Positions 9,001-47,840 of a stretch of 64,000 bases of DNA are shown here, piece by piece (the stretch's first letter is position 1; each line of letters opens with the position of its first letter). The stretch is from the NCBI RefSeq assembly GCF_002113885.1, contig NW_018407245.1, positions 126,775 through 190,774 of the forward strand, written 5' to 3'. A program made the translations under genes and the position numbers. The notes beneath the pieces are model-generated. The model did no database searches, was not told the origin of the DNA, and saw only the letters and a program-made list of their open reading frames with translations. Origin of the DNA: Mizuhopecten yessoensis (taxonomy: Eukaryota).

Positions 9001-12000
9001 GGATTTTCTCCGGGTACTCCAGTTTCCTCCAACATTAAGACCCCCGCGCTAACATCCGGGTCAACAAGAGTGATTGATATAAGTTGAAATAACTTATCAC
9101 ATAATTGTTGTAAAATAAACAAAGTTTATGTTATATTATATATAATTTATGTAAATCTCTTTCTCCAAATTTATTTGAAGCTCACAACTTACATTGTATA
9201 GAAGAAAACTTGTTTGATTATATTTAGAATTTTTGATATTAATATCAATTTACAATAAATTTATGCTATAATACACTGGATTGTTTGACATGGATCTCCT
9301 GGCCCTGGGCAACATATCTGCAATCGTACATGTATGTATTAAGTTATTTTGTTTTTACAGACTATGAGAAACTCTGTATCCGATGTGGCAAGATGTTCAC
9401 CGTGTACCCCAACGGAACGTATGCCAAAACGGAGGAGTGTACCTTTCACTGGGGCAAGGCATGGAAAAAACGTGGTAAGTCTTCTTTCCCAGTCTCAGCA
9501 GACATGGACTATAGTCTAAAAACATTGACAGGAAATCAATTAGTTAATGAGAAATCAATTTAGATTAACTTTAGGAACGTGGAGATATTCTTTGAAAGCA
9601 TTTCTTGTTGATAACATATATAGGAATGTGTGATTTGCAGAACTTGTTCAGTGGTCACTGTCACTTATAACTTATGGAAATATATTTCTGTGATTTCAGT
9701 TGCTGGTATGATTGACACTAGGTATACGTGTTGTCAAGGTGACCTAACGACAGATGGTTGTCAGATTGCCAAGGTAAGCTTGTAAGCTTATCACTCAGAC
9801 GTTGAACCAGTTTGAGATCAAACAGAGTGGTCATTGCTGTTCCTAATTGCAATTTCACGAAAATTCCTGAACTCGAGGAAATCCCTTAATTCAAGATTTT
9901 CCATTGGAAATCATTGCTAATGTTGAATAAAATTGACCTAACCTAAAGTTTTTTTCAAAGTCTAGCATTTGAAAATTTACTTAAAGGAATTTCTTTAAGT
10001 TAAAGGGGGCGAGAGGTGGGGGGGGGGGGGGGGCNNNNNNNNNNNNNNNNNNNNNNNNNNNNNNNNNNNNNNNNNNNNNNNNNNNNNNNNNNNNNNNNNN
10101 NNNNNNNNNNNNNNNNNNNNNNNNNNNNNNNNNNNNNNNNNNNNNNNNNNNNNNNNNNGGGGGGGGGGGTGCTCAGTTTCACATATGTTCCATAACGTAA
10201 GGAATTCCTGAACTGAACTTTTTTGTTGGAAAGCATATTTTGGAATTCAGGGCCTCAGTAGCCAAGTGGTTAAGGCATCTGATATTCTGCTACTACTAGC
10301 CCTCCACCATTGGGTCGCGGGTTTGAGGCCTACGTGGGGCAGTCGTCAGTTGTTTTTTCTACGGGAACTCCGGCTTTCCTCCACCACCAAAACCTGGCAC
10401 ATCCGTAAATGACCAAAGCTGTTAAAAGGACGTAAAACAAAAACAAACGAAACCAAAGTTGGAACTCAGGAAAATTTCTTAAACTACCGTAATTGTCATT
10501 CCTTTAGAAAAACAGAATTTATAAAACAAGAGCAGAGAAGTAAAGATTTATAGCAATTATTCATCATACAAAAATGTTTGACAATAAAAGGCAATCACAT
10601 TGTACATAACATAACCTAGAATTTTGAAGTCTTGGTTAAGTAATATAGGCCCAGCTGAAAACTATGCATGTATTATTATATATGGCATATAAAATGTACA
10701 GTCTTTAAACAATAGGGCTGTATGAACTGTGTGAAAAGGCTTGTGGCTTTGTTATAATTCCGGTGAAGCCCACTGTGGAATCAAACTAAACAGGGCAATC
10801 CACTTCCTTAATGAAAAAAAATTCTTCAAGGTAAATATAAGGAATTATGAGAGTAGGTCCTGATCACACATCTTGTATTTACCTGTACCTCTAGTACAAC
10901 ATGTGTGAATGGTATCCAGATTTATCTACATTTTGTTGTGTTTTGGTTACAGGGCCATGTCCACGAAACCAACAAATGGGAGACCATGTCTGGGTACATG
11001 AAGACTTTTCCATGCTCACCACCGTGTGATGGGGACTACGGGGTGTTTGCTATGGACTGTGAAATGGTAGGATACTTTTCAAACTGAATCTGTTTTCATT
11101 TAAGAATGTTTCAGAAATGGCCTGACAGTTGTAATCATATAATCCCGAGAGCTCTTTCTGTTCTACAGGTTTACAATTCTATCAGAATGAATTAATCTAA
11201 CGACGGATAAGTGTGTTAATTAATTCTTTAAAACAAAAATGGTATCTGATTTATTCTCCCTAGATTAGAAGATTTTTCTTCTTTTATTTAAGGTGTACAC
11301 AAAGTTTGGAATAGAGCTGGCGCGAGTTACTGTGACTGACCCAGAAAATGACTGTGTGTACGAAACACTTGTCAAACCAGATGCTGCTGTCGTGGACTAT
11401 AACACAAGGTAGACATTGTTCATTATTTTAGTGACCTAGGCCCCTTTCTCGTATCTAGTTCAACCAGTTTGTCTGTTTTGAAATGTAACATTTTTCGGGT
11501 ATAAATCCCGGTGGACCTGCAAATATTTATGCAGGCCTTGAAAGGCTTTGTCAAGGTTTGTCTGAAAGCAGCATTAGTTTTATACAGTAGGTCTGTCCTT
11601 ATAACCGGTTTCGATTGCGATAAACTAATGCGGCCCTATATAGCACTTAAGGGATAACCTTACAGAGATTTGTGGTGGTATTTCATGTTTTCTTATAACA
11701 GATTGAGTTTTGAAATTTGAGAAATATATATTTTCAGTTCATAAATTATTTGATCTTAACATCATACCAATCAATTAAAATACAGTTGATTCCTTTCTTA
11801 ATCAAACTTCAATATTGATTGGCCTGAAAGGATGCACAACTTTTGTAAAGCAGTCAAAACCAGATTTGTGAAAGATGTAAAATGTTTGTATTACACGGCC
11901 ATAAACATTTGCCTCAAGTCCAATTAAAACAAAGTTGTTACAAAAAGAATATTTTTAGAATGCTAATTATAGCAATTCAAATTAATGATTCAATTACTAC

Positions 12001-13960: not shown

Positions 13961-16344
13961 TTTTTCCTCTGAGGACCAGTGTAAACATTTCAAAGTTTGA
14001 TTGTGACGTTAGGAAAAAGAGCGTAAATGTACATTTGGCATGTGATATAGTAATGTTTCGTAAAGGTTGTCTTCTTTCTAAATGTAGGCAAGATATGCAC
14101 CATATGTCAGTATAGCATTGTAACCTACTTCTAGGTTCTGAAAAATATATTCAACCTATTTTTGGTTCTAAAATATTTAAGAATAATTGTTACGTCAATT
14201 TAGTGAAATTAAACTGTAATGTATCTACAGAACATTTGATTACTTTGAAAGTATTGTTTTCTACCAAAGATTTATCTTTAAAATATTTATATCTTTGTAC
14301 AGGGTTGTATTAAATTGAAATATTCATATTTCATTTAAATATTTATTTAATGGGAAAGAGAGGCCAATATCATAATAATTGTGATCATTTTAGAAAAAGA
14401 AGCAGCTATTTTCATTTTTCATATGTTGTACATAACTTGTATGTGTCGATGAACCAGCGCTGTTACCAAGATAGATCCTGTACATATTGGTAGATAGGTA
14501 GGTTCGTGTGTACTTGTTGTTACCAAGATAAAAACATGTATAGAACTTACCCGTTATACATGTATATTACATTATATGTACAGAGCTGTGAGAGTATTTA
14601 TTCCATTATTGTCTAACCTGTTTCTGTATTGTTTACAACTCAGCATGGCGAGGCTAATGATTAATATATACATATTGATGTTGTACTTGTGTTTAGATAC
14701 ATGTAGAACATTTTGCTGGCAAAAATCCAGCTATTTTGTAGTCATTTTTACCCAAGTAACCAAATAGAGAAAAAAATCATCGCTGATATACTGTAGATCA
14801 GAAAACTTTCGCCCAGTTAAATATTTACCCTTTACTGGTGAAATCCATGTTCTCCAAGTGTTAATTTTGCCCTTAAAATGTATTAACTATATATATATAG
14901 GGTATGTTGTTTACTTATATTCACTGTTAAGATAAATTCGCCGACAGTGCGAAGGGCGAAAAAAGTGCGGAAACAACTCTGGGTGAAATTTCCTGGTACA
15001 ATAAAGTATTCTTTGAAAACCTAGAGGAATGCAGATAGTCTGGTATTATTAAACCAATCATTAGACGTTTGTAAACCTAGAGGAATGTAGATAGTCTGGT
15101 ATTATTAAACCAATCATTAGACGTTCGTTTACCATTACATTCTGTTTCACAAATATGATCATTTGACAGCATTTCGTTTACAAAAATAAAACTAAATCTA
15201 CTTAAACATGTTATTATTCATCATCAGCATAATACTACGGTGAATCATATCAGTGTTTAGATTACAATATATCATTTGTTTTGCAATTCATTATCAATGT
15301 TATTTATTATGCCACGACAGATATTGTTATTAATATACAAGACTCATAAATGTTAGTTTTTGTTACCAAATGTTAGTCTCTAAATCTGTACAAAATGGAA
15401 CTATTGTTTGCTTTTATCAGATACATTTGCTGATGTCAGTTTTGTAAGAGATGATTTCAAGATATGAAAATAAATACTGGATTGAAAATGATGGTGGTTA
15501 TTGTATTAATTATGTTGCTACATGGAAGTACAAGTGTTTACAACAGCTGAGCTTATAGTTTTACAGTCTAGTAAAGTGGTCAGCACATATAATCTCTGAG
15601 CTTTTAGACATGTTTTGGAGGTCCAACGGTTAGCACACATGACATCTTATCCATGTTATTTTGGAAGTTAGCTTACTTCCACATTCGACTCCTGAGCTAC
15701 TGATCGTACTTTTAAGGTTTGTTGGTAATTAGGGTTAACGCAGTTGGGGGTAGTTTGGTTGTCACATATGACCAGCACTGATGGTTCATTGTCGTACGCC
15801 AATTGCTATAAGTTTGAAGATCTAATAGTGAAAATAGTAAATCCCTGCGCCACAGGCTGTAGGTGTAGGTTGAAGGCCTAAAGTTATGCACTTACAGGAA
15901 CATAGATTTTGAGCCGAATACGGTAGGTTGGAGGAAAATAGTAAGTATGTATGAGCCGAGAAATCTCGGAATCAATGTTCACAGACTAGAGATATAGTGG
16001 TAAAATAAATAGTGGTAAATTGAAGCATATACAACATCTTTGCGAATTGTGGTAGTGTCGTGTCAGTTTCCAACAAGATGTCCGCTTCTTGCATTGGAGG
16101 TGTTGAACTCGGATGATCGTAGTTGCATCCCGAATTTAACGGCAAAATAGAGAGCTTGGATGGAAGCACTCCTAACATGATTCTCTCAAAATCACATTTG
16201 CAAATTTAATTATATACCCAATTTTACTTTTGACCATGGTGACATTTTACATTTTAATGTTTACCTGAAGCAAAAGCATAAAATAGAATAAAAAAAATCT
16301 TATAAACCTGATCCATTACATACAATCATGGACTTGGATCTAAT

Positions 16345-18880
16345 TCTGTGATACAATACACTAGTAAGGCTGTGGGTATGGTACTCTATATCAGTGATAC
16401 AACACACTAATAAGGCTGTGTGTATGGTACTCTATATCAGTGATGCAATACACTAGTAAGGCTGTGTGTATGCTACTCTATATCAGTGATACAATACACT
16501 AGTAATGCTGTGTGTATGGTACTCTAATTCCGTGATACAATAGACTAGTAAGGCTGTGTGTATGGTACTCTAATTCTGTGGTACAATACACTAGTAAGGC
16601 TGTGTGTATATAAGTACTCTAATTCCGTGATACAATACACCAGTAAAGCTGTGTGGATGTTACTCTAATTCGTGATACAATACACTAGAAAGGCTGTGTG
16701 TGTGGTACTCTATATCACTGATACAATACACTAGTAAGGCTGTGTATATGGTATTCTAATTCCGTGATACAATACACTAGTGAGGCTGTGTGTGTGGTAC
16801 TCTATATCAGCGATACAATACACTAGTAAGGCTGCGTGTGCGTTACTCTAATTCCGTGATACAATACACTAGAAAGGCTGTGCATATATAAGAAGAAAAC
16901 TGGACACAAACAATGAACATTGGCGTGGTGTATTTTCTGTATATGACATTGTAATGTTGTGGAATCTTCTTAGTTACCTCTTCAGCATCCTCCCCTGCAA
17001 ATTAAAGCGGAAGTTTTAAGTGTTTTTGCCAAGTCTTGATGACCAATTCCGTGATACAATAAACTAGTAAGGCTGTGTGTATGGTACTCGAAGTCCGTGA
17101 TACAATAGACTAGTAAGGCTGTGTGTGTGGTACTCTACATCAGTGATACAATACACTAGTAAGGCTGTGGGTATGGTACTCTATATCAGTGATACAATAC
17201 ACTGGTAAGGCTGTGTGTATGGTACTCTAATTACGAGATACAATACACTAGTAAGGCTGTGTGAATATAAGTACTCTAATTCCTTGATACAACACACTAG
17301 TAAGTCTGTGTGTATGGTACTCTAATTCCGTGGTACAATACACTAGTAAGGCTGTGTGTATGGAACTCTAATTCTGTGGTACAATGCACTAGTAAGGCTG
17401 TGTGTATGGTACTCGAAGTCCGTGATACAATAGACTAGTAAGGCTGTGTGTGTGGTACTCTATATCACTGATACAATACACTAGTAAGGCTGTGTATATA
17501 TAAGAAGAAAACTGGACACAAACAATGGACATTGGAGTGGTGTATTATCTGTATATGACATTGTAATGTTGTGGAATCTTCTTAGTTACCTCTTCAGCAT
17601 CCTCCCCTGCAAATTAAAGCGGAAGTTTTAAGTGTTTTTGCCAAGTCTTGATGACCAATTCCGTGATACAATAAACTAGTAAGACTGTGTGTATGGTACT
17701 CTAATTCCGTGGTACAATACACTAGTAAGGCTGTGTGTATATAAGTACTCTAATTCTGTGGTACAATACACTAGTAAGGCTGTGTGTATTGTACTCTATA
17801 TCAGTGATACAATACACTAGAAAGGCTGTGTGTATATAAGTACTCTAATTCTGTGGTACAATACACTAGTAAGGCTGTGTGTATTGTACTCTATATCAGT
17901 GATACAATACACTAGAAAGGCTGTGTGTGGTACTCTAATTCCGTGATACAACACACTAGTAAGGCTGTGTGTATATAAGTACTCTAATTCCTTGATACAA
18001 AACACTAGTAAGGCTGTCTGTATATAAGTACTCTAATTCCTTGATACAAAACACTAGTAAGGCTGTCTGTATATAAGTACTCTAATTCCTTGATACAATA
18101 CACTAGTACGGCTGTGTGTATATAAGTACTCTAATTCCGTGATACAATACACTAGAAAGGCTGTGTGTGGTACTCTAATTCCGTGATAAAATACACTAGT
18201 AAGGCTGTGTGTATATAAGTACTCTAATTCCTTGATACAACACACTAGTAAGGCTGTGTGTATATAAGTACTCTAATTCCTTGATACAAAACACTAGTAA
18301 GGCTGTCTGTATATAAGTACTCTAATTCCTTGATACAAAACACTAGTAAGGCTGTCTGTATATAAGTACTCTAATTCCTTGATACAACACACTAGTAAGG
18401 CTGTGTGTATATAAGTACTCTAATTCCGTGATACAATACACCAGTAAAGCTGTGTGTATGTTACTCTAATTCCGTGATACAATACACTAGTGAGGCTGTG
18501 TGTGTGGTACTCTATATCACTGATACAATACACTAGTAAGGCTGTGTATGGTACTCTATATCAGTGATACAGTACACTAGTAAGGCTGTGTGTGGTACTC
18601 TATGTCTGTGATACAATACACTAGTAAGGCTGTGTGTATATAAGTACTCTAATTCTGTGGTACAATACACTAGTAAGGCTGTGTGTATCGTACTCGAAGT
18701 CCGTGATACAATAGACTAGTAAGGCTGTGTGTGTGGTACTCTATATCACTGATACAATACACTAGTAAGGCTGTGTATATGGTATTCTAATTCCGTGATA
18801 CAATACACTAGTGAGGCTGTGTGTATATAAGTACTCTAATTCCGTGATACAATACACTAGAAAGGCTGTGCATATATAAG
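16345..18880. repeat. Minisatellite array, ~41-45 bp unit, with embedded copies of the gene A terminal exon
   Basis: Unit gtgatacaatacactagtaaggctgtgtgtatggtactctaattcc. Interrupted at ~16888-17045 and ~17500-17657 by a ~155-bp unique segment also present at ~18878-19032. Confidence 0.95.
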
Positions 18881-23050: not shown

Positions 23051-25082
23051 ATGAAAGGTATTACAAGAACCCTACTCGTCCTTGCTGTTTCGGCCCTTCT
23101 CGGCCTCTTTTGGAGCACAGACGGAAGAACAATAAAGAGAACTGGCGATAAGTATGATACTATTTTGATCGTTTTCTTTATTATAGTGTTTTTAAGCAAA
23201 GAAACTAAGATGATTCAGTAGGGTTTTAAATGTCTATACACTGATGACGTGACTGCTCCTGCACTTCTTATTTTGTTGAAATTGATAGATTTTCTGCACC
23301 ATGTACGTTATGAAGCTTGATAATAATACTGTTGTTTTCAACGCATGTACATATTCATTTCCGAAATCGATACTTTTAGCGAATCATACTATGCTAATTG
23401 TGTATTACTTTCAAGGAGCATCAATATCTTCAAATAGATATATAGTCAAATATAAATATTTCACTTCCTACAAAGAGAAGAAAAGGCTGAATGATTACGT
23501 AGCGTTTAAATAGTTTAAATTAAGATGTTACCGCTTGATAGCTGTTAAAACATGCAGGGTAAATGTTGACTGGGACTTCTAGTTATTGTGACGAGCTATT
23601 TGTTCTTTAGTTCCAATTGGTGCTGTGAAGTGGAGCCGACCAGCTCGTCGTCCAATTTCACTTCGATAGAAATACACCAGTTTACGAAAGTGATCTGGGA
23701 GGTGAAAGTAGGTCCTATTCACCAATGTGCGGACGGTGAGGACACGACTGTTGGACCGATCGGTGTGTACTGCCAGGGTATGGTGAACGTCTCCAGGTCA
23801 GTGAGTTGTTGTCGTTAAGGGAACGCTCCATTGTCAGCGTTCTGTTACTAATTTGATAAGTCTATGCTACTATTTTTAAAGTGTCTTTCTTCTCTTTGCA
23901 AATAGATAGAGGTATTTAATTGTTTCCCGCTGAATAACATATAATATATATTACGTATTGTATTCAACGGGAAAGTCATTTAACTTTCCACTTGGACATT
24001 TTAAAGTACACACAGCGATGAAAATTTTACCGCCACAGTGCAGGAACTAACAAGGGAAATTTTTGGCGCCATATTTTAATGAAGTTACTCTCAAAGACAA
24101 TAGGTCTGCGCGCTAGTTTGAATAAGCTACTCAACACCAAGTTACCGTTTTCTGATATCATTTGGCAAGTTTTACAAAATTTTTTATCAGTTTTGTAGTA
24201 AAGTAATTGAATACAGATGTATGGAAATAGCAACTTCGTTTGATGTCGCTTTATTTGCATCTGAATAGAAAATATATGGCCCCCATCATTCTGTTTGGTC
24301 AATACCAAAATTGATTCTTAATGTTTGTCAAAGTGTGATATGATGTATCAGAAAAGTCCCTAGAATCCAATATATCACAAGCAAAAATGTAATGGCAGGA
24401 GTTTGAACGATTTCTGTGACGTTCACACGAGAAAATATTATTACAAAAGGAACCTTGTGTAGGGAGTTCATTGCAGTTTTAAAAATTCCTATTCTTAATT
24501 TGTTAAACAGGGAAAAAAAAGTTTCAATGTTATTTAACTTAAATGCAGAAAGTAACTAGTATGTCATTTTGCATACAGGACAGTTATCACATACCAACAG
24601 GTGCCCGTGGTAAAACCAGTGATACAGCAGGGCGTGTGTCCCACGGAACACCTAGTGTGTTGTGAGGGTTATGTCAAACACCAGGACCAATGTCTAAGTA
24701 AGTTACTAGCCCACACTTTACAATACTTGTGTGCGTATACTTCTATCATTCATAAACATATATAAGTGCTGTCGATTGCTGTAAAGTCACAACTCTTCGA
24801 ACAGATAAATGTTTTTAATCACATGCACGTGTCTAACGTTTAATCTTTCTAGACGTTTGCGATGTGATATACTAGTGTTGACTTTTCATTATATGTCTGG
24901 TATGTATTGGTTTTATCTATTTTATTTCATTTTACCATAAAATGTCAATTGCGATTGTTAGATAAGATGAATAAGACCTATTAAATACTGCTTCTGCTGC
25001 CGATAATTTCAAACTTGTTTCAACAGAATCCTCGGCCATTGACTCCCTCCAGGCCCTTATTGACGCTGGTTTGATCGGATAG
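23051..25082 (+). CDS. Gene B: secreted 8-Cys EMI-like protein, 153 aa (paralogue 1)
   Basis: Exons 23051-23151, 23611-23796, 24579-24697, 25027-25082 (phases 2,2,1). MKGITRTLLVLAVSALLGLFWSTDG-RTIKR-TGDNSNWCCEVEPTSSSSNFTSIEIHQFTKVIWEVKVGPIHQCADGEDTTVGPIGVYCQGMVNVSRTVITYQQVPVVKPVIQQGVCPTEHLVCCEGYVKHQDQCLKSSAIDSLQALIDAGLIG*. AATAAA at 25125. Confidence 0.88.
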
Positions 25083-25764
25083 TTACTGGCAATCAATTTC
25101 ATGTCATCTGTATAACGCATCGGAAATAAAGATATCTACAATTTAAATATTGTGTTGCGTTTCTGTTTCTTATCTATAAGTCGATATTTGATTTACGTGT
25201 CACTGAACTTGCCAACAATTCAAATAAAATAATTCAAATTGATATCTCTGTCATGTTTCGTCTTTTTCTTGGATTTCTCTTAGAACCATTTTTAAATCGA
25301 TCTACATGTAGTGAATATGTGATAACGCAAAATAGAAAACAAACAAACAATAGTGTCGATGAATATGATTGAAATATATTTTAATACAGAGTAAATGTTT
25401 TTCCATACACATTGATATTAAAAAGAACACAGTTCGTATACATTATTATATAATTACGCATAGCACATCGTTTAAACAAAAGAAAGCAGTTAAAACAGTA
25501 CATGTACATGTATTTAAATACACAGTGCACAATTTTTAAAACGTATTACAATTTCTGAGTAACAATATATATGTTGATGCAAAGTTTATATTAAAATACA
25601 TTTAAAGTACACAATATATATCAAAATGTTACAATTGTTTACATTATCACTCTGTAAAAACGTTTATGTCATATATTTGCATATGAACTCGTGGAATGTT
25701 ACATATTGTGGTCGTTGTCATCAAAAAGTTGTGAACTGACGTCACAGACTCCCAAATTATATCA

Positions 25765-39479: not shown

Positions 39480-41739
39480 TATATTCCTATTCAAGCTGTA
39501 TTTATAGATTGAACGTTAAAAGAACAATTTATTCATTTCATAATATCAATAGCTGAATAAAATCTAAACAAAAAAGGATTAATGATAAAGAAGATATTTC
39601 AAATTTATAGCTGTTTTTGGTCGATTCTGTTTGTCATCAATTATCAGGAACACAATAAAACTGTTTCCCATTTGCTGTTGACTGTAACAACATACCAAGA
39701 CACTAACTTTACCGCATTCACCCCTGAAGACACATTTGAACTCTTCCAATTGTAAAGTTATAATAGCCAGTTTATTATGAAATTTCAGGGGTGAATAAAT
39801 TGAAAGAACGATTTGTAAATGTATGACCCAATGAGTAGAGGACATCTTTCTAGTGCTACCAATGACCTTGACCTTTTGTAAAGAAAGACGAGAACTAAGC
39901 ATGTGTATGAGAAATAGGGGTCTATTTCTCTGGACATTACCTTACTATCTAAACCAAACCTATTACAAACCGCAACAGCTGTTTACTTACAGGTAACTGT
40001 ACGTGGTCAGAGTAAGATTAAACGATATCCGGGATTAAAGCGTGCAAGCCAGTCACCTTAGATATAAGTGCTAGTCATTTTGTTGCTTTTAAAAATTTGT
40101 GTGTACAAAAGGTAAAATAAAGAAATACAAATGTGTACGTACAATATCAAATGAGCAATGCATTGTATCATTATCTTCAGGGAGTTTTATATAAAACTAT
40201 GTGTTTTTTTGGAAAATATGGAGTTACTTTATCCTATTTCTGTAAAAATCAATCTTTACAAGGGCGAATTGTGTCACCACTTTTATTTAAATCCATAAAT
40301 TTAAAAAAAAATCAATTTAAACAATGAGCACGTTCTTGTATGTGTATGCTGATGCTATGGTGCCACTGGCCTAAGCTTCTAAGGTTACATTTTCAAGCAT
40401 TTGTTGTTGACATTAAAAAAACTAAGCAACATTACATTTACTTTATCATTTGAGTAGTTTTCCGTTAGGAGTTGGTTTAAGTGTAACTCAATATGACTTT
40501 CTCATTCATATGCTAAAGGAGCTACGACTTAAATCTAGGTTTTTTCATTGCAATTGCCAATGTAACTTCTGTATCAGACGTGGTGTAAACACAAACACAT
40601 ACTAATTCAACAGTTTGCTTTATAATGGACTCAATGACACCGGTATATTAGAATTATAAAATATTATTAAAATAAAAAGCTAATTATTATAAAGAACGAA
40701 TTGACCTGACTATGTCAAGGAAAGATTTGTTACCGGAGAACAACTACATGATATATTTTTGAAGTGTGAATGATGAATGAATAATTCCGGTAAAATTATC
40801 TCAGATAGACTTTAAAGAAAACAAATAAATAAACAAAACATAAACTATTTACTGATTCTTTTTTAGGCTCTTAGGCTTTTATTTTATAACTTGCATTATC
40901 CAAAATTTGAAAACCAAGGAGTAAAGATGGATCCATTTTAAGAACTAACTGTTTATCCAGGGATTTTGCGCGGATGAGCTTCAATCTACTCTGAGAAAAA
41001 AACTGTTGTCATAATGATCTGAGTACCTGATCTTTCAGTGTCTTTCATAGTTGAAGACTTGCTCACTATGTCTAAGATAATCAGTGATATATGGACTTCA
41101 CAAGCATCGACGGGAGATTCGTGATGTAAAGAATAACTTATTCCACGAATTTTTATAGAGATTCTTCAGTCTTTGTTATTGTCTTCTTTCTCCTTTCTTT
41201 CTTTAAATGTCTCCTCTGTTCGTTTTTTTGTACTTTAGAAGGTTTTGATTTTGGATGTCTTCTTTGTTTGTTACCAATGTGGTATGCTTGTGTATTTTGA
41301 TTGAAGGTATAAGGTATCCCATGCACCGTTAATATCACGAAGAAGAGTTTCATTTCAGAGTTCTGTTTTCTGGACTTAGATTATAATCCCTTCCTTTTAG
41401 AAGATGAAGCAACAAAGCATTTTTTTTGGCTTACAGTTACTTCTCTAAAGATTACAACATTGGCAGAGTGTTTGGTGGTCATCTCCAGTATTTTTGTCCT
41501 CATTTAGTTAACTGTTTTTTACAACTACTCAATTTTGAACAATTACTCTAGAAAGTGCATCGTATATACATAATTTGAGTGGTTTTTTTCAATATCCTTC
41601 AATAAACATTTAATAAAAATTAGTTCTCAAGTTTTTAAAATTATAGGTTTATTTCTTTTTCTATTGGCAAAGCATCATTATGAAAATTGAAAAATAAAAT
41701 GCAAGTGTTTGTCTTGGATGTGAATGTATAGGGATATCA

Positions 41740-42932
41740 ATATATTTATTAGACAGTAGGTGTAACCATGCAATAAATAAAATTAATCAGTGTATTAAGA
41801 TAAACAGTTGGTGCTACATTGTGCCCAGCCATGAAAACAATGTATCCGTGTATTTAGATAAAGAATAAGTGTTACCTTGTCATAAAATACAATGTGTCAA
41901 TGTATTTAAATTGACAATTTGTTTTACCCTGCCTTAAAATACATTGTATCAATGTATTAAGTAGACAGTAGATATTACAATGCAACAAATGCAAAGTATC
42001 AGTGTATTTAAATAAACAGTAGATGTTTCCATGCTGTAAAAACAATGTATTAGTTTATTTGATAGATAGTAGGTGTTACCTTGTCAAAAAATGATATGTA
42101 TCAGTGTATTAAATAGACAGTAGGTGTAACCATGTCATGACATATAATATACCCATGTATTGACATAGACAGTAGGTGTTACCATGTCATGAAATATAAT
42201 ATACCCATGTATTGACATAGACAGTTGTTGTTACCATGTCATAAAATACAATGTATCAGTGTATTTAATAGACAGTAGGTGTAACCATGTCATGAACTAT
42301 AATATACCAATGTATTGACATAGACAGTTGTTGTTATCATGTCATAAAATACATTGTTTCAATGTATTGACATAGACAGTTGTTGTTACCATGTCATAAA
42401 ATACAAAGTATCAATGTATTAAATAGACAGTAGGTGTAACCATGTCATGAAATATAATATACCCATGTATTGACATAGACAGTTGTTGTTATCATGTCAT
42501 AAAATACAATGTATCAATGTATTAACTAGACAGTAGGTGTTACCATGTCATGAAATATAATATATCCATGTATTGACATAGACAGTTGTTGTTACCATGT
42601 CATAAAATACATTGTTTCAATGTATTGACATAGACAGTTGTTGTTATCATGTCATAAAATACAATGTAGCAATGTATTAACTAGACAGTAGGTGTTACCA
42701 TGTCATAAAATACAATGTTTCAATGTATTGACATAGACAGTAGGCGTTACCATGTCATAAAATACAATGTATCAATGTATTGAATAGACAGTAGGTGTTA
42801 CCATGTCATGAAATAAAAAATACCCATGTATTGACATAGACAGTTGTTGTTACCATGTCATAAAAAAACATTGTTTCAATGTATTGACATAGACAGTTGT
42901 TGTTACCATGTCATAAAATACAATGTATCGAT
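41740..42932. repeat. 52-bp minisatellite between genes D and E
   Basis: Unit tagacagtaggtgttaccatgtcataaaatacaatgtatcaatgtattgaca; homogeneous on the right, degenerate on the left. Confidence 0.93.
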
Positions 42933-43707
42933 GATGTACAAGTAGTTAATCAAGCATTTTCTTTGCTTTATCTTACAACAACACCATATATAAGTACAAG
43001 AAGTCCTAACTGATATTTTCATCCAGAGATTATTTAATAACCGCTGAGATAGACATGAATGGCTGATTTCTATAATTTAATATTATGGTTCTATCGTTGG
43101 TAATAACGTAGCAAGATATCAAGTTTGTTTAATAATTGAACCTAATTATTACTGAAAATGAAGAGTTTATTTACAATTTTCTTATTTAAACCACCTTCTT
43201 TATATTCACAAGCAAAAGGGCATCAACGATGCTCCGAGCTAAACATGCCAACTAGGCACATTTTCACATTTAAGTCTTAAATTTAGTAGCATAGTTGTTA
43301 AAAAGGGGCATATCAGTTCTAACAATGTGCCCTGGCACGTTGGAAACAAAATATGATAATTGTTGACTTCAATTTGAAACAGTGCCTAGTTAGAATCTTT
43401 AGCCTGGGAAATTATTGATGCCCTATTGCATATAAATACCTTAGATGTTTTACCATAGGTGTAAAAACCAGGGGCCCAGAGGACCTGTATCGCTCACCTG
43501 TTTCTTTTGTTACATGAAACTGACACATAGGTAATTTAAGACCAAATTTGGTATTCTGATATTGTTGTTTGAAATTTGAAATCATAATTTTAAAGATTTA
43601 ACCCATGTTGACCTTTGACTCCTACTAGCACTTAAAGTTAACCTTTGACCTCACTACTGTAATTTAAAAAAAGATTAACACAGTTGGTCTACATTACATT
43701 TTAACAT

Positions 43708-44186
43708 GGGCAGATTGGTCGAGTGGTTAACACTCCGGACTTCCAACCAGGCGGCTGGGGTTCGATCCCATAAGTCGTCGTACACATGGAATATATAGAG
43801 AATGTGTTTTTCTCCTGCCCACACAACTCTAAACCCAGGTGGAGTATAAAATGGTCTTGCGTTGATGTTGCGGTATCTGTGCTGTGGCTTTCAAGTGGGG
43901 TGGCACTATAAATTATACCGTTGGAAGTACGGTCCCACTACAAACAGAACACAATACATCTCCAGCACACACACAGGCACTCACACTTTATAGCACTTCA
44001 TCCAGGTGGTATAGGACTAGTAGTTATCGCCTGATAAGGCAGCTCCTGCGAATTCCTCAAAATTGTATTGATTAATGTATATGCTAATTGTATTCATTGT
44101 ATTAAATTGTATATCTTTGTACAGTAAAGTACTTTAGAGTGGCTTATGTTAGCTAGATAGGGCGCTATATCAATTGTTGTATATCA
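43708..44186 (+). mobile_element. tRNA-derived SINE with L2-like tail inserted in the HINE
   Basis: A box tggtcgagtgg, B box ggttcgatccc, core acccaggtggagtataaaatgg, tail gggcgctatatcaatt; TAACAT target-site duplication at 43702-43707 and 44187-44192. Confidence 0.8.
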
Positions 44187-44758
44187 TAACATACCAAAGT
44201 ATCATCGCATCATGACTCTAGACTAAATGGTTCTTAAGATATTGTTGTTTGAAGTTTTTCACATAATTGACCCCTGTGACCTTGGAACTAGGTCAAGGTC
44301 AATTTACTGAGGAAACGTTATAGCACTCTATCCCAGGTACCTACTGGCCAAATATCATAACCCTGGGCCTTATGGAACTTTAGAAGAAGATTGTTAAAGC
44401 TTTTAACCTAAGCTGACATTTGACCCCCGACTAACACTTAAAGTTTACCTTTGACCTCATTACTGTAATGTAGAAAAAGATTAACACAGCTGGTCTACAT
44501 AACATACCCAAGTATTATGACTCTAATCAGAATGGTTCTTAGGATATTGTTGTTTGAAGTGTTTAACACATTTGACCCCTGTGAGCTTGAAAGTAGGTCA
44601 AGATCATTTTAATGAGGAAACTTTATAGCACTTCATCCCAGGTACCTACTGGCCAAATATCATGACCCTAGGTTCTCAGTTCTTCGGAAGATGTTGTTCA
44701 AAAGAAAAGGTTGACGGACGGACGGACGGACGGACGGACGGACGACGGAGTACGGCAT

Positions 44759-44943
44759 TCCGTCTTTGCGTGTTGCAGGGTTATCTTCTCGTATGAGCAG
44801 GTATTGATCGTTACGTCAATTGTTTGTGAGAGTAACGTCATCATTTTTTTGAGAAAACGACGTAATTTTCTCACACAAATCAATGACGTAACAAACAATA
44901 CCTGCTCATAAGAGAAGATAACTCTGCAAAACGCAAAGACGGA
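44759..44943. mobile_element. Hairpin MITE (almost entirely inverted repeat) inserted in the HINE
   Basis: tccgtctttgcgtgttgcagggttatcttctcgtatgagcaggtattg ... caatacctgctcataagagaagataactctgcaaaacgcaaagacgga. Confidence 0.85.
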
Positions 44944-45576
44944 TTAAGCTCACACGGCCCTTCGGGCCAGGTGAGCTAAAACCCGGTACACCAGAGTTCT
45001 TACGATGTTACCTGGCGCTTTGAACGTAAAAACACAATGATTCAAGAGCGTGCCCAATATGGACATCGTTAGCCTTGAGTATCGTTGATGACATTTGCAT
45101 GCAGATAACTCAGACAAGGATTTGTTGTATTATATGTGTTAAAAAGCTGCAAAACCGTTTTGGAAAGTCTCATTGAATCCTGCTGGTTAATTGCAAAAGA
45201 GTCAAGATTCTAAACAAGTAAGAGTTGTTGGGCCATATAGACCAAAAAATAAACAAACAAATACTCGTGAAAGATGTTGAGCTAACAATATGCGTTATTC
45301 CTGCTCCACTGAAAGATGGTGTCTTTGTGCATATACTTTTTGTAAACTTTATTTATTTCTGAATAAAATTTACATTTCAATTTACATCCAATTATTGCTC
45401 AGAAACAGCATATAATATCAGAGTGAATTTGATAATTTTGACGAAACGACAATTCAGTTGGCTTCAGCCGGCCACAGTATAATTGTAATGGTAAGAGTTA
45501 AGTTGATTATCTATTAACAATTAAAACATAAACTCAGTATGCTGAAGTCTCGATTTATTTCAACTGATAAATGTGT

Positions 45577-47840
45577 TCACCCTAGAAGTCCGGCACCTTG
45601 TAACTTGAGCAGGGCATCGGTCAAGGTGCTGAGGTATTGTCCCTCCGCCGCTGTGGAGAAATGTACAATAATAAAAATCTTATGAATCAAAACCAAACAA
45701 ATCAATGTATACATATGTGTTCGTGCGTCCACTAGGTACAAAGACGATGGCAACCAGCGAAAAGAAAACAGGACATAATTTCTACAGGGTCAGACTCCGA
45801 AAATATCCACACGAAATATTTATTTATAGAGTTGCAGAATATATCTATTTCAGAACTATTGCCAATGCGAACATTTCCACACTGCAATCAGTTTAAAGGT
45901 TTACAACGCGAACATTTTCACACTGCGATCTGTTTAAAAGGTTTACAACGCGAACATTTCCACACTGTGGTCTGTTTAAAGGTTTACAACGCTAACATTT
46001 CCACACTGAGATCTGTTTAAAGGTTTACAACGCGAACATTTCCACACTGCGATCTGTTTAAAAGGTTTACAACGTGAACATTTCCACACTGCAAATTATT
46101 TAGAGGTTTACAACGCGAACATTTCCACACTGCGATCTGTTTAAAGGTCTACAACGCGAATATTTCCACATGCGAACATTTCCACTGTTACAGTATATAC
46201 ATCTCGTAAAATAAGATCTGACCGATACTGTTATTTTTGTTATAAACTCTTAACCTGATAACTCGGTAATTTATTTCATAACTTTATAACCTGATAACTC
46301 AGCAACATCTGGGTCAAAGTAATACCAGGTCGGGTAAAAGACAACATAGCAACAAGGCATACTAATGAGTATAATAAAAAAAATCTACCTTACCTGATAA
46401 CTCGATTATTCTAATGAAGTTGTCAGGTGTAATATATCTTTGAGATTTGTGTTAGTAATTTATCTTGGTAATATTTTGCATATACCGATGTTATACGTAC
46501 CCAAACAATTATCAACGGCAAGTATGAATCCGTTACAGCACGTGATCTGTTCGTCTGGACAGACGCTCTTGTTAGGGACGAGCTGGGTGTCGATGTAGGT
46601 TATCAGTTTCTCACTGTATTGAAACAATATAGCTAGTGATGTAATGCTAGGAACAAAGTCAATATGTGATTTACTCTCTGATATCATAATATATAACTAT
46701 TCATTAAATGATATGTAATGTTGTGACTCTTTCTCCTCGAGTTTCATGTGTTCATCTTTTTCTCTTTTAGTCCAGTAGACAAATCAATTGCGGAAGCAAA
46801 ATAACGAATTGTTTAATTGACCAAATGGAGACGATTTCTTGGTTAAAATATTTTAACAGATTTCAGTACATTAACAGATAATAACGGAGGTTATTTTAAT
46901 GTCTTAGAAGACCCTGGTAGATATTACTGTAAAATGACTTACACATATTGTATATTCGTAGTTTCACACTTATGGCTGTTCATGAATCCGCACGAGTCCT
47001 GTGTGTGTACCTGGACTGACTCCCGAATTGTTTTTGCTACGATCTTTGTCATCTGGGTGTTTTGTACCACCTGGTCAGCACCGTTCTTACAACACCAGTT
47101 ACTGTAACAGGTAATGGCATAGAGGAGTTTAATAATTAGAAAATGTTACAAGTAACACTACCTCTCTTTGTTTCCAATATTGATAAGCTATCTATAAAAT
47201 TAAAAACCTGCCAATTTATAACTTGTTCCATAAATATATGCAAAATATTCACCAAATTCTGATCATGTGTAGAACTATGATACTATGGTACAATTATCAA
47301 CTAAAAATGTTGAGGATTTACAGGTTATATCTAACATACAAGCTTTTTACTTCAAAAATTGATCAAGTATCATTTTTGATTCTAATATTTGACCAATGTC
47401 CACCAAAATTACATCAGAATTCTATGGTATCATACCATGATGTAAAATGCATTAAATCTGTTGTGGTATCATGGCATATCTTGTACATAATATTTTTACA
47501 AATTGCTGACAAAGCAATTATCATATAACAACCTCTACTAAATGGGGTAATATCGAAGAATATTTTAGAACGATCTTTATATTGATAAAGAGGTGTGATT
47601 ATATTGATCAGAATACACTTTTCCACTATACACTAATTTTAAGAATATGTGTGTTTTTATACAGAACCTGCTGTCACCCATTTTCTTCCCTCTCTTCAGC
47701 ATCAGTTGCAGATGTCGGGGAACCTGGTCATAGTGCACTCTTGCTAATAAATCAAGTTCATCCTGTGTATATACACGAGACTCGGAAACATTCCAGAGTG
47801 CGAACACTACCAGAAGCTGTACCAAAAACAATTTGTACAT
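45577..47840 (-). CDS. Gene E: secreted 8-Cys EMI-like protein, 172 aa (paralogue 4)
   Basis: Exons 47840-47668, 47101-46943, 46613-46501, 45650-45577 (phases 2,2,1). MYKLFLVQLLVVFALWNVSES-RVYTQDELDLLARVHYDQVPRHLQLMLKRGKK-MGDSSNWCCKNGADQVVQNTQMTKIVAKTIRESVQVHTQDSCGFMNSHKCETTNIQYVEKLITYIDTQLVPNKSVCPDEQITCCNGFILAVDNCLAAEGQYLSTLTDALLKLQGAGLLG*. AATAAA at 45559-45554. Confidence 0.9.
45865..46186. repeat. ~41-bp tandem repeat in gene E intron 3
   Basis: Unit aaggtttacaacgcgaacatttccacactgcgatctgttta, ~7 copies. Confidence 0.9.

Follow-up and report, generated by a model that had tools for sequence, protein, structure and literature searches.

The DNA examined here (the window, 64,000 nucleotides in full) comes from the scallop Mizuhopecten yessoensis (NCBI RefSeq assembly GCF_002113885.1, contig NW_018407245.1, positions 126,775 to 190,774 of the forward strand), has a GC content of ∼35% and contains between its positions 23,051 and 47,840 the four genes B, C, D, and E. 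These genes, each of which is expressed or annotated, lie in tandem and are likely to represent four ancient subfamilies, one each, and to encode processed, secreted ligands or adaptors built on an EMI fold. A cluster of four such genes encoding stand-alone, EMI-like proteins with eight Cys had been described in a sequence-only reading of the window, and all of the details of that observation that were checked are confirmed. The family that emerges is wider, older and more like hormone precursors than that reading could see.

The six-frame list of open reading frames (ORFs) of the window holds exon-sized pieces only and no whole gene. Gene models were built from the window by finding GT-AG combinations that keep the Cys frame, then the last exons, and then closure from each ATG, where a short fourth exon for the tail and a GTAAG donor after the last Cys were used because the RefSeq protein of gene C (P0001) shows both. 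Genes B and C are on the + strand and genes D and E on the − strand, each has four coding exons, and the 12 introns share GT-AG ends and the phases 2/2/1. Gene B (exon lengths 101/186/119/56 nt, 153 aa) begins with exon 1 (23051..23151), which carries the ATG, a putative signal peptide and a short pro-part with KR at its end. This is followed by exon 2 (23611..23796), which encodes SNWCC and C-x14-C between an AG acceptor and a GTCAGT donor, by the 119-nt exon 3 (24579..24697), which encodes CP-x5-CC-x9-C and has a GTAAGT donor directly after the last Cys codon plus Leu, and by exon 4 (25027..25082), which encodes a tail ending in LIDAGLIG and the stop, with AATAAA at 25125-25130. Gene C (170/153/113/71 nt, 168 aa) comprises exon 1 (30638..30807), with a putative signal peptide and a pro-region containing an LP motif and RESR, exon 2 (31447..31599), with DHWCC and CGFLHLGRC, the 113-nt exon 3 (32174..32286), and exon 4 (32696..32766), whose tail ends in HNHDIVVG before the stop, with AATAAA at 32774-32779. 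On the − strand, gene D (191/153/113/44 nt, 166 aa) runs from exon 1 (38678..38868) through exon 2 (37998..38150), with QHLCC and CGLLSTGHC, and the 113-nt exon 3 (37546..37658) to exon 4 (36943..36986), which ends in ELTMQLIG and the stop, with AATAAA at 36916-36911. Gene E, also on the − strand (173/159/113/74 nt, 172 aa), has a putative signal peptide, a pro-region and KRGKK in exon 1 (47668..47840), SNWCC and CGFMNSHKC in exon 2 (46943..47101), a 113-nt exon 3 (46501..46613), and a tail ending in LKLQGAGLLG and the stop in exon 4 (45577..45650), with AATAAA at 45559-45554.

The four coding exons, the phases, the third exon of 113 nt in every gene but B, where it has 119 nt, and the product lengths of 153–172 aa (here 153, 168, 166, and 172 aa) had all been proposed before, and the rebuilt models agree with them. 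The proposed frame of eight Cys residues is matched exactly by the computed spacings, which are 33/14/27/5/9 in B, 29/7/25/5/9 in both C and D, and 32/7/25/5/9 in E. AATAAA had been placed 8–45 nt past the stop; the signal does follow each stop, and the distances are 42 (B), 7 (C), 26 (D), and 17 nt (E), a range of 7–42 nt. Once spliced, the models of genes B, C, and E give exactly the M. yessoensis RefSeq “uncharacterized” proteins LOC110454401 (P0012), LOC110454419 (P0001), and LOC110454431 (P0006), respectively, of which P0001 was the entry point, being found with the ORF that runs from exon 2 of gene C into the intron. Gene D has no RefSeq entry and no M. yessoensis protein in the collections searched, which hold only its Ylistrum and Pecten orthologues. 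The gene models are far beyond chance because the exon lengths recur in a second cluster and orthologues are present in other scallops (see below).

Read evidence covers gene D, and the junctions of B, C, and E rest on RefSeq identity and conservation. A check of all 12 junctions by RNA-seq had been proposed, and the part of it that was carried out, for gene D, was successful in that its three junctions (36986|37546, 37658|37998, and 38150|38678, seen as CT..AC on the + strand) are all exact in contigs of run X1, which is probably RNA. That run X1 is RNA is only guessed, and the run is hard to explain in any other way because its contigs skip introns at several hundred-fold depth. The word depth over the exons of gene D is 270–2100 in this run, compared to ∼5 in the one intron that is covered, while run X4 gives thin, DNA-like cover only. 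One 1361-nt contig of run X1 follows exons 2 and 1 of gene D as far as a point 10 nt within the coding sequence (38858-38868), where it diverges from the genome and continues for more than 1 kb with other sequence. Its protein would begin with M-V-V-S, whereas that of the gene model begins with M-K-A-L-V-V-S; an alternative first exon, an allelic variant or a chimeric assembly might account for the difference.

A search with an alignment that included exon pieces yielded 15 scallop family proteins, and the database proteins P0012, P0001, and P0006 were used to represent the products of genes B, C, and E. A profile of the 15 proteins run against 1.84 billion cluster representatives gave 94 representatives at E ≤ 1e-3, 47 of them at E ≤ 1e-10, so the profile search for relatives that had been proposed did find them, and in several spiralian phyla. 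The proteins had also been described as free-standing, and most of the 94 relatives are indeed 140–200 aa in length and are matched from signal peptide to tail. The 30 representatives that were looked up comprise 24 named ones and six unnamed JGI/IMG metagenome proteins. Named bivalve members are from Crassostrea virginica, Saccostrea, Mytilus edulis, and Pinctada fucata, and the others are from the chiton Liolophura, the annelid Owenia, the nemerteans Tubulanus and Lineus, the bryozoan Bugula, and the rotifer Seison. The family is provisionally restricted to spiralians among named members, with ∼1/3 of the 94 labeled. The alignment of 63 members shows no change in any of the eight Cys and little or none in the WCC motif, CC-x-G-[YF] and the last Cys; its consensus is ...LP...(basic site)..GD(N/S)S-HWCC-x30-G...CGFxGxxxC-x6-Y-x5-Y-x12-CP-x4-VCCxGY-x6-C-...L..L...G(L/I)(L/I)G. 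The N-terminus is hydrophobic in every aligned member and is read as a signal peptide, and the window proteins extend 22–27 residues past the domain.

The proposal that the family is unnamed is borne out. Every named member is labeled uncharacterized, unnamed or hypothetical, none reaches the gathering score of any Pfam profile, and an exon-by-exon Pfam scan of the window genes gave nothing. Literature searches by LOC number and UniProt accession returned no paper on the family, and the literature on EMI domains in molluscs and on Cys-rich prohormones returned no description of it. The product of gene B (P0012, LOC110454401) carries the UniRef name “Hydrophobin.” Fungal hydrophobins, like this protein, have eight Cys including two adjacent pairs, but their Cys order is C-CC-C-C-CC-C whereas that of the scallop family is CC-C-C-C-CC-C, and no hydrophobin profile matched in Pfam scans at E ≤ 1 to 10. 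The assignment was rejected on both grounds, and the name looks like a misannotation.

Insights into the fold were provided by AlphaFold2, which gave the same picture with 15 and then with 63 sequences (predicted local distance difference test, pLDDT, 70.6 and 73.4). In the model, two 26-residue strands (residues 13–38 and 44–69 of the mature part) form a long β-hairpin whose tip is the C-x7-C loop. C-terminal to the hairpin, short strands make up a small knot, and the tail is helical. The long hairpin with a Cys-closed tip that had been anticipated from the letters is thus what AlphaFold2 predicts. A structure search of the ESM Atlas returned the family’s own rotifer cluster in the first of its ten rows and then, in rows 2–10, MEGF11, MEGF10 (two rows), Draper, a 136-aa EMI+EGF protein, MEGF11 again, EGFL7, MEGF6, and EGFL8, with template modeling (TM) scores by query of 0.40–0.52, 60–86 residues aligned and root mean square deviations of 2.7–4.2. 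All nine of these non-family rows carry an EMI domain; Pfam EMI is listed for three of the clusters, and MEGF6/10/11 and Draper are known EMI proteins. Although the Atlas is expected to contain many more proteins with EGF repeats only, none of these is among the ten rows, and the aligned lengths exceed one EGF repeat.

The predicted fold is accompanied by sequence landmarks. The proteins with EMI domains (EMILIN/Multimerin, MEGF10/11/Draper/CED-1, EGFL7/8, and EMID1) and the scallop family share a landmark order of aromatic-W-C, C-x6-7-C, Tyr-rich strands, CC-x-G-[YFW], and a last Cys 8–9 residues on, together with a predicted twisted antiparallel hairpin. The N-terminal W-C, the C-terminal CC-x-G-aromatic and the final Cys are all present in the family. 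Pfam EMI is also the commonest sub-threshold match, being found in six of the 63 members with a best E of 0.16, and in two of them, a nemertean and a chiton protein (P0068 and P0076), it scores 12.8–13.2 bits over profile positions 2–68 of 69, which lie exactly over the Cys domain. The family nevertheless differs from EMI in having extra Cys in WCC and CP, in lacking the EMI Cys ∼10 residues after the first, and in a domain that is ∼15 residues longer. While the EMI domain occurs once, at the N-terminus of multidomain extracellular proteins, and is held by three disulfides (PMC11949838), the proteins of the window are free-standing at 153–172 aa and have eight invariant Cys in another arrangement. 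They stand alone after a pro-region that appears cleavable, whereas EMI is found at the N-terminus of large multidomain matrix and receptor proteins. The module can be described as EMI-like in predicted fold and landmark order, and not as a member of Pfam EMI, as its Cys set, its length and the context in which it occurs are different.

A further parallel in architecture may be the vertebrate proteins MFAP2 and MFAP5 (MAGP-1/2). The matrix-binding domain of these small proteins has an EMI-like fold without sequence likeness to EMI, as found by iterative Foldseek searches, and the adjacent Cys pair (CC) is treated as a hallmark of true EMI domains (bioRxiv 10.64898/2026.05.13.724420). Like the scallop proteins, they are secreted, are shorter than 200 aa, have an EMI-like, disulfide-rich twisted β-sheet as their sole folded part and show low sequence likeness to true EMI. 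The two groups differ in that the MAGP domain lacks the characteristic CC, which the scallop family keeps, and in that MAGPs are vertebrate and the scallop family is spiralian; the family has no Pfam MAGP match. MAGPs are not known to have a terminal-Gly signal.

Outside the Cys frame, the B, C, D, and E proteins are only 23–33% identical to each other, and such divergence had been taken as the fast kind, on a fixed scaffold, that is seen in proteins of defense, adhesion or recognition. A maximum-likelihood tree of the mature parts (119 columns), in which the deep forks are open, argues otherwise. The four proteins fall into four clades that contain, besides scallops, Saccostrea, chiton, and Tubulanus (B-type; support by ultrafast bootstrap/Shimodaira-Hasegawa-like approximate likelihood ratio test 98/95), oysters and chiton (C-type, 97/94), chiton, Owenia, Lineus, and Tubulanus (D-type, 100/95), and Mytilus, Crassostrea, and Pinctada (E-type, 95/95). 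The tree clearly indicates that the four genes of the window represent four ancient lineages. A second cluster, with B′, C′, D′, and E′ in the same order and on the same strands as in the window, is at contig C216:1162917-1186999; exons 2–4 of B′, C′, and E′ are as long as those of their counterparts, and D′, which was built on the exon boundaries of D, is intact at 166 aa and, like D, has no M. yessoensis protein among the hits. The ratio of non-synonymous to synonymous substitution rates (dN/dS), whose calculation among orthologs had been proposed at the outset, was computed here between the two clusters by the Nei-Gojobori method and is 0.42 for B/B′, 0.19 for D/D′, and 0.21 for E/E′ (dS 0.26–0.34), while the C/C′ pair is saturated and consists of two different C sub-lineages, both of which are also found in Ylistrum. 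The ratios indicate that the B, D, and E pairs are under purifying selection. The divergence is therefore old and not fast, because the clades are ancient and recent duplicates have dN/dS values of 0.19–0.42, and the low mutual identity of the four proteins reflects their age since they sit in four old clades. Contig C74618:1422-1565 contains one more D-type third exon, whose score equals that of D′ and which is probably an unplaced haplotype or a duplicate.

The clustering of the family is old as well. The Crassostrea virginica locus CM130320.1:8311570-8332640 holds at least five family genes in 21 kb, one of which is D-like and apparently intronless in the part that was matched. The Pecten maximus locus LR736841.1:6994839-7018844 keeps the order E, D, C, and also holds a C1-type gene that is not among the protein hits.

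These data make it very improbable that the proteins are peptides of defense or recognition that evolve fast on a fixed Cys scaffold and might act on membranes by means of the long amphipathic hairpin. Such a role, to which we assign only a slight chance, would fit the 23–33% identity of the paralogs outside the Cys frame and the best matches among solved structures, which are the stems of β-pore-forming toxins (E 0.08–0.3). Orthologs, however, are well conserved, the gene D product being 81% identical to those of Pecten and Ylistrum (both 166 aa) and the E types differing little among three scallop genera; dN/dS is 0.19–0.42, and the four types are older than the split of molluscs from nemerteans and annelids. 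The toxin matches are also non-significant (TM ∼0.2) and cover a generic hairpin only, and the predicted hairpin, apparently clamped by Cys at tip and base, is not accompanied by a cap domain. Identity with a β-pore-forming toxin was separately rejected, as the matches are to the hairpin stem only (E ≥ 0.08, TM ∼0.2, Z ≤ 3.3) and there are no cap or rim domains.

The Cys domain is flanked by putative processing signals. A basic site precedes HWCC in 53 of the 63 members; in 35 of these the site is dibasic or R-x-K/R-R and lies no more than 12 residues away (e.g., RQRR, RKRR, RSKR, or KR), while the further 18 have a single basic residue or R-x-x-R. At the other end, the C-terminal residue is Gly in 33 members and Gly plus Lys/Arg (GK, GR, GKKK, GRKRK) in 12, or 45 of the 63 together, where the frequency of Gly in proteins in general is ∼7%; all four window proteins end in two hydrophobic residues and Gly. 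A terminal Gly or Gly-basic sequence is the standard signal for amidation, by a carboxypeptidase and then peptidylglycine α-amidating monooxygenase. Signal peptide, basic site and Gly or Gly-basic end are the sequence features of amidated secretory prohormones, which are a functional class and not a sequence family, and all three are found here. The Cys-rich protein hormones of the CHH/ITP, crustacean female sex hormone and neurotrophin type are likewise made as pro-proteins with a signal peptide, a pro-peptide, a basic site and a disulfide-rich mature protein. The precursor layout of the scallop family is the same, and the C-terminus of CHH/ITP is also amidated from Gly. No sequence or fold relation to these hormones was found, and the mature part of the scallop proteins is larger than most amidated peptides.

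Because of the processing signals, a hormone- or cytokine-like ligand is favored over a bulk matrix protein, although we would put the chance of such a role at somewhat less than even. It is less probable, and in our view doubtful, that the proteins are accessory to the matrix, that is, matrix, adhesive or shell/egg-coat components that bind matrix polymers via the EMI-like module in the way that MFAP2 and MFAP5 act on microfibrils. Their length of ∼170 aa, acidic N-terminal half and Cys-rich C-terminal half recall the MAGPs. The word depth of gene D, up to ∼2100 in run X1 and none in two RNA runs, would suit a product of a gland or secretory epithelium, and EMI and EMI-like domains are modules of matrix proteins (PMC11949838; bioRxiv 10.64898/2026.05.13.724420). 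On the other hand, the alignment has no repetitive or low-complexity sequence, which is common in matrix and adhesive proteins, the conserved convertase-type site and Gly or Gly-basic end are typical of peptides of regulated secretion, and four ancient, single-copy-like subfamilies under purifying selection are more like a fixed set of ligands.

Several results weigh against the reading of these proteins as processed EMI-fold ligands or adaptors. None of the 63 members reaches the gathering score of 25 bits for Pfam EMI (PF07546/IPR011489), and the four window proteins and their exons give no EMI match. A PF07546 scan of the genome (987.6 Mb in 82,659 contigs) found a true EMI exon on another contig and missed the family genes, and a wider EMI search of the genome gave only weak exon fragments. 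When the family profile was aligned by hhalign with one true scallop EMI (L001), the probability was 5.7%, with HWCC paired with HVC and CGFLHLGRC with CGTLDWRRC. The structural link to the EMI fold, which is a twisted antiparallel sheet rich in disulfides and with an extended β-turn, compares predicted models with predicted models at TM ∼0.5. Among solved structures, Foldseek searches of the PDB with both models matched nothing but the long hairpins in pore toxins and flagellar rings (E ≥ 0.08), a wide VIA-align search gave best Z scores of 3.6 and 2.7, and a profile search of PDB sequences gave a chance match only (E 0.44); the true scallop EMI (L001) also finds no PDB chain by sequence, which leaves no solved EMI for comparison by that route. 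As to processing, 10 of the 63 members have no basic site before HWCC (in most of these there is no pro-region and the signal peptide abuts the mature part), there is no terminal Gly signal in 18, and the evidence for cleavage and amidation consists of motifs. As to source, gene D has no reads in the raw M. yessoensis RNA-seq runs X21 and X24, and its expression may therefore be restricted to a tissue or stage. The family is also not among 63 neuropeptide precursors from scallop ganglia, and the supplement contains no WCC-bearing precursor (PMC5996578); this speaks against the likeness to hormones and mildly weakens a neuronal source.

Another explanation is that the likeness to EMI is convergent, with an independent Cys-rich fold (a long hairpin and a small knot) mimicking the EMI spacing and CC-x-G-Y. 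All of the sequence tests are below threshold, TM scores are just 0.40–0.52, and Cys count and order differ, in that the family lacks the EMI Cys ∼10 residues after W-C and has two others in addition, namely the second of WCC and that of CP. The three disulfides of EMI (PMC11949838) are to be compared with eight Cys in the family. We regard convergence as unlikely, however, as all nine of the non-family Atlas neighbors bear EMI and none is an EGF-only protein, the weak Pfam matches are colinear over positions 2–68 of 69 and coincide with the limits of the domain, and the W-C start, C-x7-C middle and CC-x-G-[YF]-x7-C end follow the order of EMI. The EMI assignment made from the letters holds as far as the predicted fold neighbors and the weak, full-profile Pfam matches are concerned and fails as a claim of sequence membership (E 0.16, and 12.8–13.2 vs. 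25 bits). The structural check suggested with it (AlphaFold and Foldseek) was similarly divided, with EMI-bearing neighbors in the Atlas and only generic hairpins (E ≥ 0.08) in the PDB.

In the preferred reading, that of secreted EMI-fold ligands or adaptors, each precursor would comprise a signal peptide that is removed, usually a helical pro-region of 30–40 aa with a conserved Leu-Pro motif, a basic site (often dibasic or R-x-K/R-R) 5–7 residues before the invariant (H/N)WCC, and a mature part of ∼105–120 aa. The core of the mature part would be a divergent EMI-like module, in which a long, twisted, two-stranded β-hairpin is closed at its tip by C-x7-C (CGFxGxxxC) and held at its base by a knot formed from WCC, CP, CC-x-G-Y, and the last Cys, with the eight invariant Cys probably forming four disulfides. 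The tail would be an amphipathic helix (L..L...G-hydrophobic-hydrophobic-G) that usually ends in Gly or Gly plus Lys/Arg. After oxidative folding of the eight-Cys module, the pro-region would be removed by an enzyme of the furin or prohormone convertase type and the C-terminal amphipathic helix would be amidated from the terminal Gly. The protein of ∼105–120 aa so released may then bind an extracellular partner through its long hairpin and its tail. By analogy with the EMI and EMI-like modules of EMILIN, EGFL7, MEGF10/Draper, and MFAP2/5, we infer that it acts as an extracellular binding ligand or adaptor; for EMI modules, multimerization and ligand binding are the functions given (Doliana et al., 2000, as cited in PMC11949838).

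The region also contains repeats. Tandem 57-bp copies of the 3′ end of exon 2 of gene D, including the donor, extend into its intron 2 (37761..38051, − strand); there are five such copies in this intron, each with a GT donor, and ∼20 in D′ (contig C216:1171061-1172097). Thin run X1 cover on the copies of gene D (depth ∼12) hints that these donors are occasionally used. Minisatellite arrays of 1.2–2.5 kb are found at 25766-28122, 33671-36179, 41735-42933, and 16339-18870, with units of 53, 39, 52, and 46 bp, respectively; three are in spacers between the family genes and one is upstream, and both of their strands can be translated into long ORFs that are spurious. A run of 124 N at 10035-10158 of the window is an assembly gap or masked sequence.

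If the preferred reading is right, this analysis defines a family for proteins that are currently annotated as “uncharacterized LOC” in oysters, mussels, scallops, chitons, nemerteans, annelids, bryozoans, and rotifers. Its definition by an invariant Cys frame, the HWCC motif, the CGFxGxxxC tip and the GLLG-type end would allow a Pfam-type profile to be made. For scallop annotation, the expressed gene D and its paralog D′, which have no protein in the collections searched, are gained and the “Hydrophobin” label is corrected. More tentatively, and with the odds against it, the family may represent unrecognized protein hormones or cytokine-like ligands of spiralians, that is, EMI-fold pro-proteins that are cut by a convertase and amidated, whose four types were fixed before the split of molluscs, annelids, and nemerteans and are clustered in bivalves, each presumably acting on a receptor. 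If the preferred reading, that of processed EMI-fold ligands or adaptors, is right, the EMI fold, which is known from the N-terminus of large matrix proteins and engulfment receptors, would also exist as a free, processed and probably amidated small protein across several spiralian phyla, and spiralian endocrinology and matrix biology would gain four orthologous types of ligand.

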